From contig JAADVB010000049.1 in assembly GCA_023334545.1 (NCBI GenBank), forward strand, positions 28,092 through 92,091: 64,000 nucleotides of DNA, given 5' to 3'. The notes beneath the pieces are model-generated. The model searched no databases and was not told where the DNA came from. It saw only the letters and a list, made by a program, of their open reading frames with translations. Position 1 is the stretch's first letter; each line of letters opens with the position of its first letter. This stretch comes from Salisapilia sapeloensis CBS 127946. Taxonomy: Eukaryota; Protista; Oomycota. This document shows positions 10,391 through 34,821 of the stretch, piece after piece. The translations under genes and the position numbers were made by a program.

Positions 10391-11463
10391 TTAGTCTGTA
10401 GTGAATTGATAGCCGTTGGTAGCTTTTATGAGTTTCTGGACGATCTCCTCTACTTCGACTTCGTCCCTCCCATCAATCGTCAGCTTGGTGCTGTAGGAAG
10501 CATCATGGACACCAGTGTTCTCTTTCGTTAGGTTCACGTAGCTACCGATGGATACAGTCGGATGTGCGTTCTGGATGGCTGTCAAGTCCTCTGCTAGCTC
10601 TCCTTCCTTAAGCATTGTATGGACCTGGCATTCATTTCTTTAGTCATGTCGAAAGTAGGATACTTGGATAGGTCGTACGATAGAGCGATGGATCGGGATG
10701 CCAGTGAAATGGTCCTTGTTGTAATGCAGCATTTCTTTGACGATAGATGGGATGCCAGGAAGGACGTAGACGTTGTGCACGTAGGCTAGAGGAACCCACA
10801 TGCCGGTATCAAGGACTTGACAGTTCTCTGGTAGAATCGCCATACGCTTCCTGCTATCCGTCACTTCGACGTTTTTCTCTGCAAATACCTTGCTCATCTT
10901 CTCGAGTGTCGGTTCATGCAGCTCTACGCCTCGACCGAAAGCCTTGGCCTATGTCTGGACTTAGCATCGATATAGATGGAACGATAGTAACTAGACAAAA
11001 CGTACCACGCCTTCGTATGTGATATCGTCATGCGTCGGACCAATGCCTCCTGTCGTGATGACGTACCCTGAGGGTCCGACGAGCTCAGACAAGTCTTTCA
11101 CAGTAGATGCAATCGTCTATACATGCAGCAAGATGTCAACAAAATAAAACCATCATAAAGCTGCAATAACACATACATCAATTTCATCCGGAATGACTAC
11201 GATACGAGAGAGATCGACACCTCGTTCAAACATAAAGTTCGCCACGAAATGCGAGTTCGTGTCTTGAATCTGCATACGAAACACAAGATGAGCTACGTCT
11301 CCATGACATGGCCATAACATGCAGCTACCTTTCCAGATAGCACTTCATTTCCGATCACACATAGAGCTGCACGAGGAGGTTCCGTGGTAGTGGTAATGAA
11401 TCGACCGTGGGAACGGATGGACCGTCCAAGTGGCCACGTAAGACGTCGGGCATGTAGCATCAT
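10391..11463 (-). CDS. Stand-alone molybdopterin-binding (MoCF_biosynth/CinA-like) domain protein, Fpy1/FLAD1-MPTb-like, intron-rich
   Basis: Hand splice: MMLHARRLTWPLGRSIR..AALCVIGNEVLSGK|IQDTNSHF (intron 11270-11328). Later exons contain TTGGIGPTHDDIT, RKRMAILPE, NVYVLPGIP and VSIGSY. Confidence 0.85.
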
Positions 11464-11551
11464 TCTTCCTCAATATCCTCATTCGGTTTAGAAGGTCTTT
11501 GCATCAGTTTCCAGAGGTGACAACACTTCCTGACAACGAACAAGCGGAGCC

Positions 11552-13412
11552 ATGGAGAGTGCTCCGAATCGAATGCTTCTCGAGGTATGGACTATTGTAG
11601 ATCAAAACATCTAATGTACATTTCTGCACGTACTATATGTTATGATGAATACTGTAATTGGAACAATAAATGGAATGACTGAATGAATGGCACTATTTAA
11701 TTAGCGCATTCGCGAAACCAAGGACTCGATTGCAGCATTACAGCAACAAGTTAACAAGTACGATGACCTTGCCGATACGCTGAAAGAGCTACCTGACAGA
11801 CTGCAACACACGGTCATGGTACGATCCTTTAAGACTATTGGAGTATTGCTCGAGTGAATTTATCATTCTTGTCGTGGCAGGTACCAATGGGCAAGAGAGC
11901 CATGATGCCAGGAAAGATAGTGCGATCGAATGAGATCCTCGCGCACTTGGGCGACGAGTACTTTGCCTGGGAGTCTGCGTCTCGATCTATCGCCATCGTC
12001 GACCGAAAGAAAGAGAGTAGGCTTAATCCCTTTTCTACAATTGCCGGGGTCTTCTATAACCGCTAATGGAAATTCGTAGCTCTAACGAAAGCGATCAAAC
12101 TGCAGCAAGAATCTCTTGACTCCATCTCATCTACTCAAACGGAATCCAACGAACTTTTGAATGCTAAAAAGGTACGTGATGTAGATCATTTTACAAGCAT
12201 TATCCTCTATTCTCACGACGTCCGGTAGATGTATGAAGCTGAGGGTATCCGGGAGATCACTGAATCTGAAGAAGAAAGCAACAAGATGGCTGTATCTCGA
12301 GCTACACAAGATGGTACCTCGACCACTTCCATTAAACGTATCATACACTTTCTAATCCGTCGTTCAAACAGACATGAACGAGTACTTTGAAATGGAAGAG
12401 GAAGAACGGAAGAAACAGGAGAAGACAGCATGGGACTGGGACGACGTGATGCGTCGGATGGAGGCGTTGGAAGCGGCCGAAGAGCGTGGTGAGAATGAGC
12501 CTTCCATAGAAGAAGAGTCAAAAGGCCACGTCAGTGCCGAAGCCCAAGCCACTAAGCTCAAAGCTGACGGTAACAGCGCCTTTGCTAAACACCAGTACAG
12601 TCGGGCTGTCGAACTGTACACTCAAGCCATCGCTTTCGACGCTTCTTCCCACGTACAAAGGATTTTTCGTATGCTTTCTCCCATCAGAATTCTCACCCGC
12701 TCTTGTAGATTCTCTTCGGCAATCGAGCCGCAGCGTATCAGCGACTGAAAGAGTATAGCAAAGCCCTGAAGGATGCTTCGGAGGCTGTGAAACTAAAAGA
12801 TGACTGGGTCAAGGTACTTGTCTCCCTCTAGACATTCCTCTTAGCGAGGTTTCTAACGATAAAGCAGGGTCACTACCGACGTGCTGGTGCTCTCGCATCA
12901 CTCGGGCGCTACAAGGAAGCAGCTGATGCGTACGAACGTGCGCACAGTCTCAATCCAAGTGATAACAAGCTTTCAAACCTAGCGCTAGAGATGCGAGCAA
13001 AGGTGGTACCTCCTACCGCCCAGCAACCACAACAGCAGAGCTGTCCGACACCTCCTTCCGCATCGAGTTTCGCATCCGTCACGGAAGCGACATCTGACCT
13101 ACCGACGAACACATCCTCCTTTGCGTCCAAGCCTCTATCGTCCTCGACGGCAGCGTTCTCAGGAAGTATCATGGAAAAAGAGATCCAGGAGAAAGCTCCT
13201 CCATCTGTCGAGCCTAGCAACGACAGCACTCGCCCAACGTCTCGTTTCCTAGGCACCAGTCGATCCGGAGAAAGCTTATCGCTCGAACCTGTTGGAGAAG
13301 CTGTACGTCATCTAATTTTTACTAGTATACACGTAGCCTAACGATACGATGGTAGGAACCTGTGCAACGCGTCTCTCGATTCAAAGCAGCAAGAGCAGCT
13401 AGAAAGAACTAG
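11552..13412 (+). CDS. URI1: Unconventional prefoldin RPB5 interactor (URI/Bud27-like) with an inserted 3-repeat TPR domain; multi-exon
   Basis: Spliced: MESAPNRMLLE|RIRETK..LPDRLQHTVM|VPMGKRAMMPGKIVRSNEILAHLGDEYF (prefoldin-alpha hairpin); acidic linker; TPR KADGNSAF..LFGNRAAAY..WVK|GHYRRA; C-terminal RVSRFKAAR URI box; TAG at 13410-13412. Confidence 0.85.
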
Positions 13413-13449
13413 AGCAAAGAAACATGGTATTCGAACGAAAAACCTAGGA

Positions 13450-14969
13450 CTACCAGTCTCCTGTGAAAGCAGCCTCGCTCTCTTGTTCCATACGTCGCTT
13501 GTCCTTGGCAGCACCAACGACCTGTTTGAGCATCGTCGACTCGAACAACTTGACCGACTGTCCCATCGACGTCTTGTCCCATGCTATTTCATACAGCATT
13601 AGATTCTCCTAATTATGACCTCACTCTTATCGAAAAACCTACCAGCCTTGTCTCCACTCGCTTCGTTCAGCTCTTCCTGCAACTGACCGAGCGTCGGGAC
13701 TGTAAACGGATTAAAGTCTTCCACTGTGTCAGCATCGAGCGGCACACAGACTCTTCCTGTCTTTGGATGGACAGCAAAAGGGCTTTTCAGAAGATGGTTC
13801 CGTTGCTTGGACACGTTCGCATCCAGACGAGGGTATAAATACGCCAAGACAATCTCCTGCACGCACGTACGCAAATCTGCTAGTGCTGCTCTGCGACTAG
13901 CATCTTGCTGCTGATTCGCACCACGCTTGCGTCCTAAAGCATTGTTTCCTCTCGAGATGGCATTATTCACGCTATCTACTAGCTGCTCCCACTTTTCTTC
14001 CGGAGAAGAAGTGCAGGTAGGTACAGTCCATTTTTGCTCTAACTGACGACGTAAATCGTCATCTGGGATCATGTCCAGCAAAGGTTTCCATCTCTTCTCT
14101 TCCATTAAGACGCCCAGACCGTCTTCCTTGATGACCAAGTCCACAAACAGCGGCTCGATGATCTGATACGCTCGACTATTCCATCTCTCGTCATGTACTA
14201 CTCTTATTACAATAAGCAAGCAAGACATACTTTAAAGAAGGATGGAGGGGCTGCTGAAGACGCACTTTGCGTCGTGTGTTCTCACTGGCTTCTACTAGCG
14301 ACAAGTACTGCGTGACGGCTGAACGAGCTTCGTCCGTGAGGTTACGAGCTGCTTCATCCGAGACCCAGCAATGGATACCTCGACGACCAGAGTAGACCCA
14401 CATGAGCTGCTGGAAGCCAAAGTCTTGTCGAAGAGATGCTTCCATGACTTTGACGGCAGGGATCATGAGTTTCCAACATCTGGAGCAGATCGCAGCTCCC
14501 TGGCAGCACGTACGCACGTCGTCGTAATCCGTAAGATCGATATCAAACACCAGCTCTCGCTGCTCTGGTACGAACTCGGAAGAGTTCACTTTGCCTTTCT
14601 CGGCCGGAGACACAGAGAACACGGCGCCAATATCGATCTTGAATGGCAGCATCTTGATCATACTCGTCCGCATCTCGGCAGCAGTGTGGAACGATTTAAA
14701 ACGGATGTAAGTATCATCCTCGAGTGTAAACGACAGCTCTCGTCGGTGAAAAAAATCTGTGTCTGAAGCATATTAGAAGCAAGATGACAGAATCGATGTG
14801 AAAAGCTAGAGTACCTCCATCATACGACAGCCACTGCACCATTTGCTCATACGGAAAGAGCCGATCTATCTCAGGCATCAGTATACATACAAATAACTTT
14901 TTAACGGGCACTAATAACACCATAATAGAGCTGTAGAAGCTCTGGAGAGAACACCTCTTCATTCCCCAT
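13450..14969 (-). CDS. PRIM1: DNA primase small (catalytic) subunit
   Basis: Spliced start MGNEEVFSPELLQLYY|DRLFPYE; motifs KIDIGAVF, RELVFDIDLTDYD, WVYSGRRGIHCWV, YPRLDANVSK..HLLKSPFAVHPKTG; last exon ends AAFTGDW*. Confidence 0.95.
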
Positions 14970-33342: not shown

Positions 33343-34821
33343 ATGATCATGTCGGAAGCGATAGATGGACGAGTCGCTGCTATGCAGACGCAGCAGCACA
33401 TTCGAGAGAATGCATCCGAGCTACAAGACTACTTTTCAGACCTGTATGCGTGGGAGAAGAAGATTCAGCAGCAAGAACAAACTCGCAATGTGACGCGTAG
33501 CAACCAGTCGAGTGACGCACCAGACCCTCGGATGCATGCAAAAGTGGATTTAGCAATTGGTACACGCGATAACAGTGCCAGGAAGGATGCAAAGAGAGCT
33601 GATGCACATACGTATGATCGAGGATATCAGCGCTGGGAGAAATTTGATGTCGTAAGTCGAATAGTAGAGCATACAAGTGACTAGTCCTCAAGTGTCTGTA
33701 GGAAGAGGCATTGCGTGAGGATGGTAAACCAAGTACCAAAGTCTCCTCAAAGGTAGATACCATACCTCTACAGCTATATGATAATTGAGAATGATTTAGT
33801 TATCCGCTAGACGACGCCGGTGTCCAAGCCGAAAGCTGCCACTACTGGCAAGTCCAGAGGAGAGATCGAGCGTGAGGATGGGAATAATCACTACAAACAA
33901 GGAGACTATATCGCTGCCATCAAGTGTTATACGAGAGCCATCGGGTACGACGCGTCCAACCCGCTCATTCTCTCCAATCGCGCCATGGCGTACTTGAAAA
34001 CACGCGAGTACGCCAAAGCAGAAGAGGACTGTACTCGCGCTCTATCACTCGATAGCACCCACACTAAGTCATATACACGCAGAGGAACTGCAAGAAATGC
34101 ACTTGGGAAGCATCGTCTCGCGTTGGCGGATTTCCAGCAAGCAGCGTCTCTTGATCCAAAGAGCAAGCAGATCCAGAGCCAACTTGCCACCACGAGAGAC
34201 CAGATGAAGACAGCTATTAAGAGAGCTCCAAAGCATACAGACATACCTATAGCAATCGTAGAGTCTTCCGCCAAGGAAGTAGAGTATGAGCATCCGATAG
34301 AACGACAACAGGAAGCAAATGCAGAGGAGGAAGAGATAGAAAAGGTGGAAGAGGAAATATCTGAACCGAGTGTGGCATCATCGGCGGCTCCAATCCTGCC
34401 TCAACTACCGTCGAAAGCGCCATCGACGTCCTACGAGTTTACTCGTGTGTGGAAGTCACTTGTTCCGAGAGGAGACGCAGAGCACCTCTCTCAACTGCTG
34501 TCTCTCCGATCGAGATACCTGCAGATGATTCAGCCTAGTGCCTTGCCTCGCATCTTTAAAAGCTCAATCGAAGAATCCGTGCTGCTCGACATCTTTCACG
34601 TGCTTCGGCTGGAACTAGATGCAGAAAGGATAACTTCATCCTATGCAGCCGATGTGGCACGATCGTTGACGCAAGTCCCTCGCTTCAACATGACCGTTAT
34701 GTTCCTTTCGAAGAAGCAAAAGGAGGACATGGAAACTGTCCTACATCACCTCCAGACGAGCGAAACTAGTGATGAAGCCACCTCGTCTCTAGCTAAAGCT
34801 TACGATATCAATTTGAAATAA
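33343..34821 (+). CDS. RPAP3: RNA polymerase II-associated protein 3 (R2TP TPR subunit), single TPR domain + RPAP3_C
   Basis: QQHIRENASELQDYFSDLYAWEKKI N-terminus; TPR DGNNHYKQG..SNRAMAYLK..KSYTRRGTAR; C-terminal PSTSYEFTRVWK..PRFNMTVMFLS. Confidence 0.88.

Follow-up and report, generated by a model that had tools for sequence, protein, structure and literature searches.

A probable oomycete orthologue of the prefoldin-like protein URI with a carboxylate-clamp TPR domain

We have studied a gene of the oomycete Salisapilia sapeloensis CBS 127946, found in a stretch of 64,000 nucleotides (nt) of contig JAADVB010000049.1 (positions 28,092 to 92,091 of the forward strand, assembly GCA_023334545.1). 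We will call this whole stretch the window; all coordinates are given in it. The gene lies on the plus strand, in positions 11552–13412. The comparison of its sequence makes it probable that it is the oomycete orthologue of URI/Bud27, an assignment which is well supported but not proven. The order of its domains is as follows: an alpha-type prefoldin domain, a conserved acidic helical linker, three tetratricopeptide repeats (TPR) with a capping helix, a disordered tail and a C-terminal URI box. The reading which we favour, with somewhat better than even confidence, is that this URI has a built-in clamp for docking Hsp70/Hsp90, as a second docking point beside RPAP3.

Gene structure and splicing

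The three-frame forward translation of positions 11200–13800 gives a single gene with nine exons and a coding sequence of 1338 nt (445 codons and the stop codon). All nine exons are open in their frames; the two codons split by introns are ACT (Thr) and GAC (Asp). All eight introns have a size of 53–120 nt and GT..AG ends. The ATG at 11552 is preceded by an in-frame TGA at 11531, with no ATG in between. The stop codon is TAG, at 13410–13412. The exons are:

11552..11584, plus strand: exon 1, the first 11 codons, beginning with the ATG; the RNA-derived contigs are spliced at its donor GT (11585)
11705..11818, plus strand: exon 2, helix 1 of the prefoldin coiled coil; weak match with Pfam Prefoldin (profile 5–38), aligned with orthologue residues ~18–56
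11881..12016, plus strand: exon 3, beta-hairpin region of the prefoldin domain (VPMGKRAMMPGKIV...LGDEYF) and beginning of helix 2; PF02996 with E=5e-7 (profile 43–87), 69% identity to Bremia P0010
12080..12171, plus strand: exon 4, helix 2 of the prefoldin coiled coil; colinear with the orthologues, helix 89–150 in the orthologue model
12229..12313, plus strand: exon 5, conserved acidic linker (IREITESEEES); E144, E146 and S149 do not vary among the 30 orthologues
12372..12652, plus strand: exon 6, acidic helices with YFE.EEEE...W.WD..M.R.E.LE, then TPR1 with clamp K and N; from Pfam TPR and the alignments with orthologues and Hop, linker helices with a confidence (pLDDT) of ~80 in the orthologue model
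12709..12813, plus strand: exon 7, TPR2 with clamp N, then the beginning of TPR3 with clamp K; TPR_1 with E=2e-6, aligned in full with Hop residues 39–73
12868..13302, plus strand: exon 8, remainder of TPR3 with clamp R, capping helix, low-complexity tail and FSGSIME motif; TPR_1 with E=1e-7 and motif conservation
13356..13412, plus strand: exon 9, C-terminal URI box (RVSRFKAAR) and stop; 76% identity to the C-terminus of P0010

The evidence for splicing comes from the assembled contigs of three public sequencing runs of one study (X1, X2 and X4). Four runs of this study contain 64% of the sampled words of 11400–13600, approximately the share made up by the exons and the untranslated regions (UTRs). 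The contigs of the three runs skip the eight modelled introns exactly at their GT..AG borders, with zero differing letters. All nine exons are found on one contig in X1 and also in X4; the contig of X2 ends with exon 8. Exon 5 is not among the listed aligned pieces: 86 letters of contig are found between the pieces of exons 4 and 6, which fit its length. The three runs are guessed to be RNA, but their intron-less contigs can have no other source than spliced RNA. A preliminary description of this DNA, made from its letters, had claimed one spliced frame over 11552–13412; the nine open exons and the eight skipped introns agree with it.

The RNA-derived contigs are continuous from the URI gene into both of its neighbours (11400–11551 and 13413–13584), with a further splice at 13584. 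In this compact genome the UTRs of neighbouring genes overlap or abut.

Prefoldin domain and URI box

The window protein was scanned with Pfam exon by exon; the whole-protein search and the structure are those of its Bremia orthologue, P0010 (459 amino acids). Exons 2 and 3 match Prefoldin (PF02996), while exons 6, 7 and 8 match TPR_1/TPR_2. The alpha-type prefoldin domain is N-terminal; in the orthologues it reaches 1e-18 with PF02996, over profile positions 3–111. The URI prefoldin hairpin which had been read in the preliminary description corresponds to the match of exon 3 with this family (E=5e-7). In the AlphaFold2 (AF2) model of the orthologue, built on an alignment of 30 sequences, the prefoldin part has a helix in residues 2–45, strands in 54–88 and a second helix in 89–150.

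At the other end of the protein we find the URI box. The corresponding Pfam family is DUF3835, which accompanies Prefoldin in URI-type clusters of the ESM Atlas. It is matched at the extreme C-terminus of the orthologues, over positions ~40–77 of the 78 of its profile. The score is above the cut-off of 21 bits in Phytophthora nicotianae (P0068, 23.8 bits) and in Bremia (P0010, 22.3 bits); it is below it, 16–17.5 bits, in three other orthologues, from Pythium and Saprolegniales. Exon 9 of the window codes for 18 amino acids, too short for a Pfam scan. Its box RVSRFKAAR, already pointed out in the preliminary description, has been assigned by alignment with the box of the orthologues (76% identity to P0010), which matches DUF3835 in the two species mentioned.

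In the ESM Atlas P0010 belongs to a cluster of 76 members, which are all from Oomycota and all contain both Prefoldin and TPR_1. Outside this cluster, its 205 N-terminal residues have as nearest structural neighbour a chordate URI1 cluster, with a template modelling (TM) score of 0.67 over residues 4–195. A further neighbour is an arthropod cluster with Prefoldin, Prefoldin_3 and DUF3835. Both rank above PFDN5, which covers residues 5–139 only. URI is defined in reviews by three regions: a prefoldin (PFD) domain, a domain which binds RPB5 and, at the C-terminus, the URI box (PMC10893143; PMC2346476). A sequence search of the PDB did not match any solved URI: the best match for the prefoldin part was PFDN5 and the tail had no match. 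A full-text literature search did not find any paper which prints the URI box motif.

The TPR clamp

The sequence supports the view that the TPR is a complete carboxylate-clamp domain, of the type found in Hsp70/Hsp90 co-chaperones. It has three TPR motifs and a capping helix, with seven helices between residues 209 and 356 in the orthologue model. The three repeats lie in the same frame as the rest of the protein, as had been proposed: TPR_1/TPR_2 are found in exons 6–8. Carboxylate-clamp TPR co-chaperones are recognized by five residues, K, N, N, K and R, which are present in the window and in the orthologues. In the window we have found all of them where they had been claimed, in the alignment with Hop TPR1:

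12560-12562, plus strand: clamp K of LKADGN, exon 6, aligned to LKEKGN of Hop TPR1
12572-12574, plus strand: clamp N of LKADGN, exon 6, aligned to LKEKGN of Hop TPR1
12721-12723, plus strand: clamp N of GNRAA, exon 7, aligned to SNRSA of Hop
12811-12813, plus strand: clamp K of WVK, exon 7, aligned to WGK of Hop
12877-12879, plus strand: clamp R of GHYR, exon 8, matched to GYSR of Hop through the orthologue alignment

In the orthologues these residues are K226, N230, N261, K291 and R295. They are identical in 30 out of 30 sequences, from Peronosporales, Pythiales and Saprolegniales. The clamp of Tah1 is formed by K8, N12, N43, K79 and R83, equivalent to the clamps of CHIP and Hop, as stated in PMC13153604.

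When the TPR of the orthologue (residues 205–345) is compared with the sequences in the PDB, the scores are 75 bits for PP5, 65 for SGTA, 64 for both Hop TPR1 and Hop TPR2B, and 57–62 for RPAP3 TPR1; SPAG1 is also found. The fold gives a similar picture: the best Foldseek matches in the PDB have a target TM of ~0.9 and a root-mean-square deviation of 1–1.6 A, and all of them are EEVD-binding clamps. They are Sgt2/SGTA, Hop TPR1 with the Hsc70 peptide, SPAG1 TPR3, RPAP3 TPR1/TPR2 with HSP90 peptides, CHIP and PP5. These relatives do not tell which chaperone would dock, as they range from domains which prefer Hsp70 (Hop TPR1, SGT) through dual binders to Hsp90 binders (PP5, RPAP3).

The pLDDT of the orthologue model is 96–98 in the TPR, ~80–96 in the prefoldin coiled coil and ~80 in the two linker helices (159–202). 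The tail is disordered, with a short C-terminal helix at the URI box. The overall score (pTM) is 0.36, so that the relative placement of the domains is undefined.

Distribution and conservation in oomycetes

Judged from the sequences, the URI-TPR design is shared by all the oomycetes sampled. An exhaustive HMMER search of 1.84 billion representatives with exon 6 as a query gave orthologues with 45–57% identity, covering the linker and TPR1. There was no match of the window protein with itself in this search, the closest orthologues having at most 57% identity. Other matches, such as P0012, P0013 and P0055, were considered as fusions and rejected: they are generic multi-TPR proteins. The long orthologues carry Prefoldin and TPR, for example P0010 of Bremia, P0028 of Thraustotheca (415 amino acids) and P0014 and P0015 of Aphanomyces. 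A word-indexed search with P0010 gave about 40 full-length or partial oomycete proteins with PF02996 and TPR families. They belong to Bremia, about 15 species of Phytophthora, Peronospora, Hyaloperonospora, Plasmopara, Nothophytophthora, Peronosclerospora, Pythium, Globisporangium and Thraustotheca. Outside the oomycetes we searched for the fusion and for URI with the whole P0010, its prefoldin part (10–140) and its C-terminal part (380–459), with E up to 10. Only oomycete and unrelated TPR proteins were found; the search is based on words of five residues and its blank is no proof of absence elsewhere.

The preliminary description could not tell if the fusion was annotated in other oomycetes. 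It is present and annotated in Bremia, Phytophthora, Peronospora, Hyaloperonospora, Plasmopara, Pythium, Globisporangium, Thraustotheca and Aphanomyces, but its names are generic or misleading. The proteins have been deposited as hypothetical, as "Prefoldin, alpha subunit", as "uri1, prefoldin-like chaperone", as "Hsp70-Hsp90 organizing protein 2" and as "Molecular co-chaperone STI1". The names related to Hop/STI1 are misnomers. Hop/STI1 has several TPR domains together with DP (STI1) domains; our protein has a single TPR domain and no match with PF17830, which is present in true Hop matches such as P0042. The URI-TPR sequences and their Pfam domains are thus already public under inconsistent names, and they are general to oomycetes. 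In the full-text literature searches we did not find any paper which describes a URI with a TPR, and the word TPR is absent from the prefoldin reviews consulted (including PMC10893143).

The nine exon translations tile the orthologues colinearly, from the first to the last residue. With P0010 as a query, tblastn gives an identical order of parts in the window and in two Logan contigs (L001 and L002). Summed over the exons, the window protein is ~50% identical to every orthologue of Peronosporales and Pythiales, and ~44–46% identical to those of Saprolegniales in the aligned parts. By these values the source would be an oomycete outside the Phytophthora-Pythium group. In the 30 sequences the mean column conservation is highest in the C-terminal box (0.87), followed by the TPR (0.78), the prefoldin domain (0.74), the acidic linker (0.71) and the low-complexity tail (0.41). 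The linker motif YFE.EEEE...W.WD..M.R.E.LE is conserved among the 30 orthologues.

Some other features were found in this comparison. A motif F-S-G-x-(I/V)-x-E (FSGSIME in the window, 13156–13176, exon 8) has its F, G and E invariant in the 30 orthologues. It is placed about 50 residues before the URI box/C-terminus; in Thraustotheca it falls inside the part matched by DUF3835. At the N-terminus of the Saprolegniales orthologues P0028 (Thraustotheca) and P0138 (Aphanomyces), residues 1–25 form an extension, M(A/T)NY.KW(N/D)RILRELxEDxxE, absent from the window protein and from Peronosporales. It resembles the W-D acidic motif which opens several Hsp90 co-chaperones. Two public records probably contain annotation errors. 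P0099 of Phytophthora ramorum lacks the sequence from the middle of the TPR to the tail; we have rejected it as an isoform without TPR, since the cut lies inside the TPR domain. P0014 of Aphanomyces astaci has 170 foreign residues at its N-terminus, with DUF1990 in co-members of its cluster.

Proposed function and alternative explanations

URI-TPR would be the alpha-type subunit of a prefoldin-like module which handles RPB5 and the assembly of RNA polymerase. Its clamp would grip cytosolic Hsp70 and/or Hsp90 by the EEVD tail at their C-terminus. In this way the ATP-driven chaperone would be kept beside the clients of the prefoldin-like holdase module (RPB5, RNA-polymerase subunits), bypassing RPAP3. 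In its sequence and in the orthologue model, direct recruitment of Hsp70/Hsp90 by URI is plausible.

A canonical RPAP3 gene is found in the same window at ~33343–34821 of the plus strand, 20 kb from the URI gene. Its open reading frame 33820–34821 (plus strand) has one TPR domain followed by RPAP3_C (PF13877, E=7e-22). An open reading frame located upstream (33343–33684) ends in a Y..W.KFDV-type motif and is probably an earlier exon of RPAP3. The preliminary description had suggested a rewired PAQosome. This idea does not hold in the sense of a TPR which moved from RPAP3 to URI, as a normal RPAP3 is still there. Since RPAP3 is present, the clamp of URI would be a second docking point and not a replacement: an extra docking site. 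We also considered the TPR of URI as a recent copy of the RPAP3 TPR of this genome and rejected it: the identity of the latter with the TPR of P0010 is 29%, less than the identity of P0010 with human Hop TPR1 or PP5.

The segment W.WD..M.R.E.LE placed before TPR1 (12410–12470, exon 6) aligns weakly with residues 86–162 of human RPAP3 (16.8 bits). This alignment hints at a module inserted from an RPAP3-like co-chaperone, but it is too weak to conclude.

Several points weigh against the docking of Hsp70/Hsp90 by an oomycete URI. The sequencing runs are only guessed to be RNA and their contigs extend into both neighbouring genes, so that a contig is no proof of a single transcript. The structure is that of the Bremia orthologue, ~50% identical to the window protein. 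The assignment to URI is based on the DUF3835 match, on structural neighbours in the Atlas, which are leads only, and on the names given by annotators; the RPB5-binding region has been placed as a candidate, in the conserved linker helices 159–202. The binding of an EEVD tail is deduced, for all these proteins, from the clamp residues and the fold, and the clamp alone does not specify which tail is bound. Carboxylate-clamp TPRs reportedly can have ligands which are independent of chaperones.

Different explanations have to be compared with the one given above. A gene for a short URI-like prefoldin and an adjacent one for a small TPR co-chaperone might have been merged, either by read-through or in the gene model. 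In favour of this, the contigs are assemblies without strand information which also merge neighbouring genes, and the model P0099 of P. ramorum lacks most of the TPR. But the cut of P0099 falls in the middle of a repeat, after TPR1, and resembles a spurious intron. The spliced frame is free of stop codons, intron 5 links the linker to the TPR exon in frame, and the same colinear protein has been modelled independently in more than 30 species. The URI box comes downstream of the TPR, which means that parts of URI are found on either side of it. An uninterrupted frame with the TPR flanked by URI on both sides is a strong argument for one gene, and we give hardly any credit to the merging of two genes. 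The protein might also be a different alpha-type prefoldin, a paralogue of PFD3 or PFD5 which has acquired a TPR and resembles URI in its box by coincidence. In the PDB the best sequence match of its prefoldin domain is human PFDN5, with 33 bits; feature matches of the N-terminal part in the Atlas point to prefoldin subunit 3, with a value (0.79) below the range considered reliable; the DUF3835 scores are close to the threshold and fall below it in Saprolegniales and Pythium. The PDB search matched no URI chain, so that none was available for comparison with PFDN5. In the Atlas, the chordate URI1 and the arthropod Prefoldin plus DUF3835 clusters extend to residue ~195 and precede PFDN5. Canonical PFD3 and PFD5 have ~150–200 amino acids and lack a C-terminal extension, while here DUF3835 is matched at the very C-terminus, as in URI, in two species. 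Some annotators have given the name uri1 to the protein. A PFD3/PFD5 paralogue appears quite improbable to us.

The alternative to which we give more weight, although we still consider it unlikely, accepts the gene as described and changes the ligand: the clamp would grip another acidic C-terminus or internal motif instead of Hsp70/Hsp90. It could be a client, another subunit of the PAQosome or the acidic linker of URI itself, as an autoinhibitory contact. The five clamp residues define a pocket for carboxylates, not a partner, and a highly acidic conserved linker is found directly upstream of the TPR. On the other hand, EEVD binding is proven for all the nearest neighbours in sequence and fold. 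No segment of the chain is placed confidently in the groove by the AF2 model, whose low pTM leaves the domain arrangement undefined. We keep the docking of Hsp70/Hsp90 by a URI orthologue as the preferred reading.

Neighbouring genes

URI-TPR is followed by the small subunit of DNA primase (13599–14673, minus strand) and by RPS8 (~15211). This order is common to the window and to L001 and L002, which are Logan genomic contigs from other samples (SRR15309572 and SRR15309571), both with the whole URI-TPR architecture. Their open reading frames equivalent to exon 6 (P0003 and P0004) are 52–54% identical to exon 6 of the window. From these sequences, the order URI-primase-RPS8 is a conserved microsynteny between diverged relatives.

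Significance

Oomycetes include major crop and fish pathogens. The assembly chaperone is essential in some organisms, as it is the case for uri in the fly (PMC2346476). For these reasons a feature of URI specific to this lineage is worth knowing. According to a review, the cooperation between HSP90 and the prefoldin-like module of URI within the PAQosome is still unclear. A lineage with an intact and invariant EEVD-type clamp on URI offers a simple handle on this question: it predicts a direct contact of URI with Hsp70/Hsp90, which five point mutations should break. The finding also corrects database names, as several URI-TPR proteins are labelled Hop or STI1. No practical use follows yet.

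A wider interpretation, which we put forward tentatively and would not defend as the probable one, is that in oomycetes, perhaps in stramenopiles, prefoldin-type holdases are wired directly to ATP-driven chaperones. URI-TPR and beta-prefoldin-TPR proteins would turn the prefoldin-like module into an Hsp70/Hsp90 co-chaperone, which hands over its clients independently of R2TP. If it were true, RPB5/RNA polymerase and other assembly clients would pass to Hsp70/Hsp90 without the participation of R2TP. In that case the fusion would serve as a natural "Rosetta stone" for the contact between URI and Hsp90, which is only indirect in animals and yeast.

Comparison with known systems

Like URI1, Bud27 and plant URI, the oomycete protein has an N-terminal alpha-type prefoldin domain, a long acidic region and a short C-terminal box (the three regions are described in PMC10893143). 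It differs from URI1 and Bud27 by the presence of a complete carboxylate-clamp TPR with three repeats between the acidic region and the URI box. With 445 amino acids, the window protein is shorter than human URI1 or Bud27. According to the reviews, the place of the TPR is occupied in animal and yeast URI by a disordered acidic stretch.

RPAP3, Tah1 and Spaghetti have a carboxylate-clamp TPR with the same fold, which binds the tails of Hsp90/Hsp70 in the PAQosome system. RPAP3 also has a W..D-type motif ahead of its TPR, a weak resemblance (16.8 bits). RPAP3 is a separate gene, and its TPR in the window has the low identity with the orthologue TPR given above (29%). Unlike it, the oomycete URI lacks RPAP3_C: Pfam does not match PF13877 in any exon of the gene or in any orthologue.

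Hop/STI1 (TPR1 and TPR2B), SGT/Sgt2 and PP5 give the best matches with the TPR of the orthologue: 64–75 bits, 29–36% identity, a target TM of ~0.9 and identical clamp positions. The oomycete URI differs from these proteins by the absence of DP, phosphatase, U-box and glutamine-rich parts. Finally, in stramenopiles there are fusions of a beta-type prefoldin subunit (Prefoldin_2) with TPR_1/TPR_2, which we know from Atlas clusters: one of 257 amino acids, commonest in Oomycota, and another one of 326 amino acids, commonest in diatoms. They also join a prefoldin subunit to a TPR, but their subunit is a canonical beta-type one and not URI; these proteins are shorter and lack the URI box. Joining chaperone parts with clamp TPRs may be habitual in this lineage.

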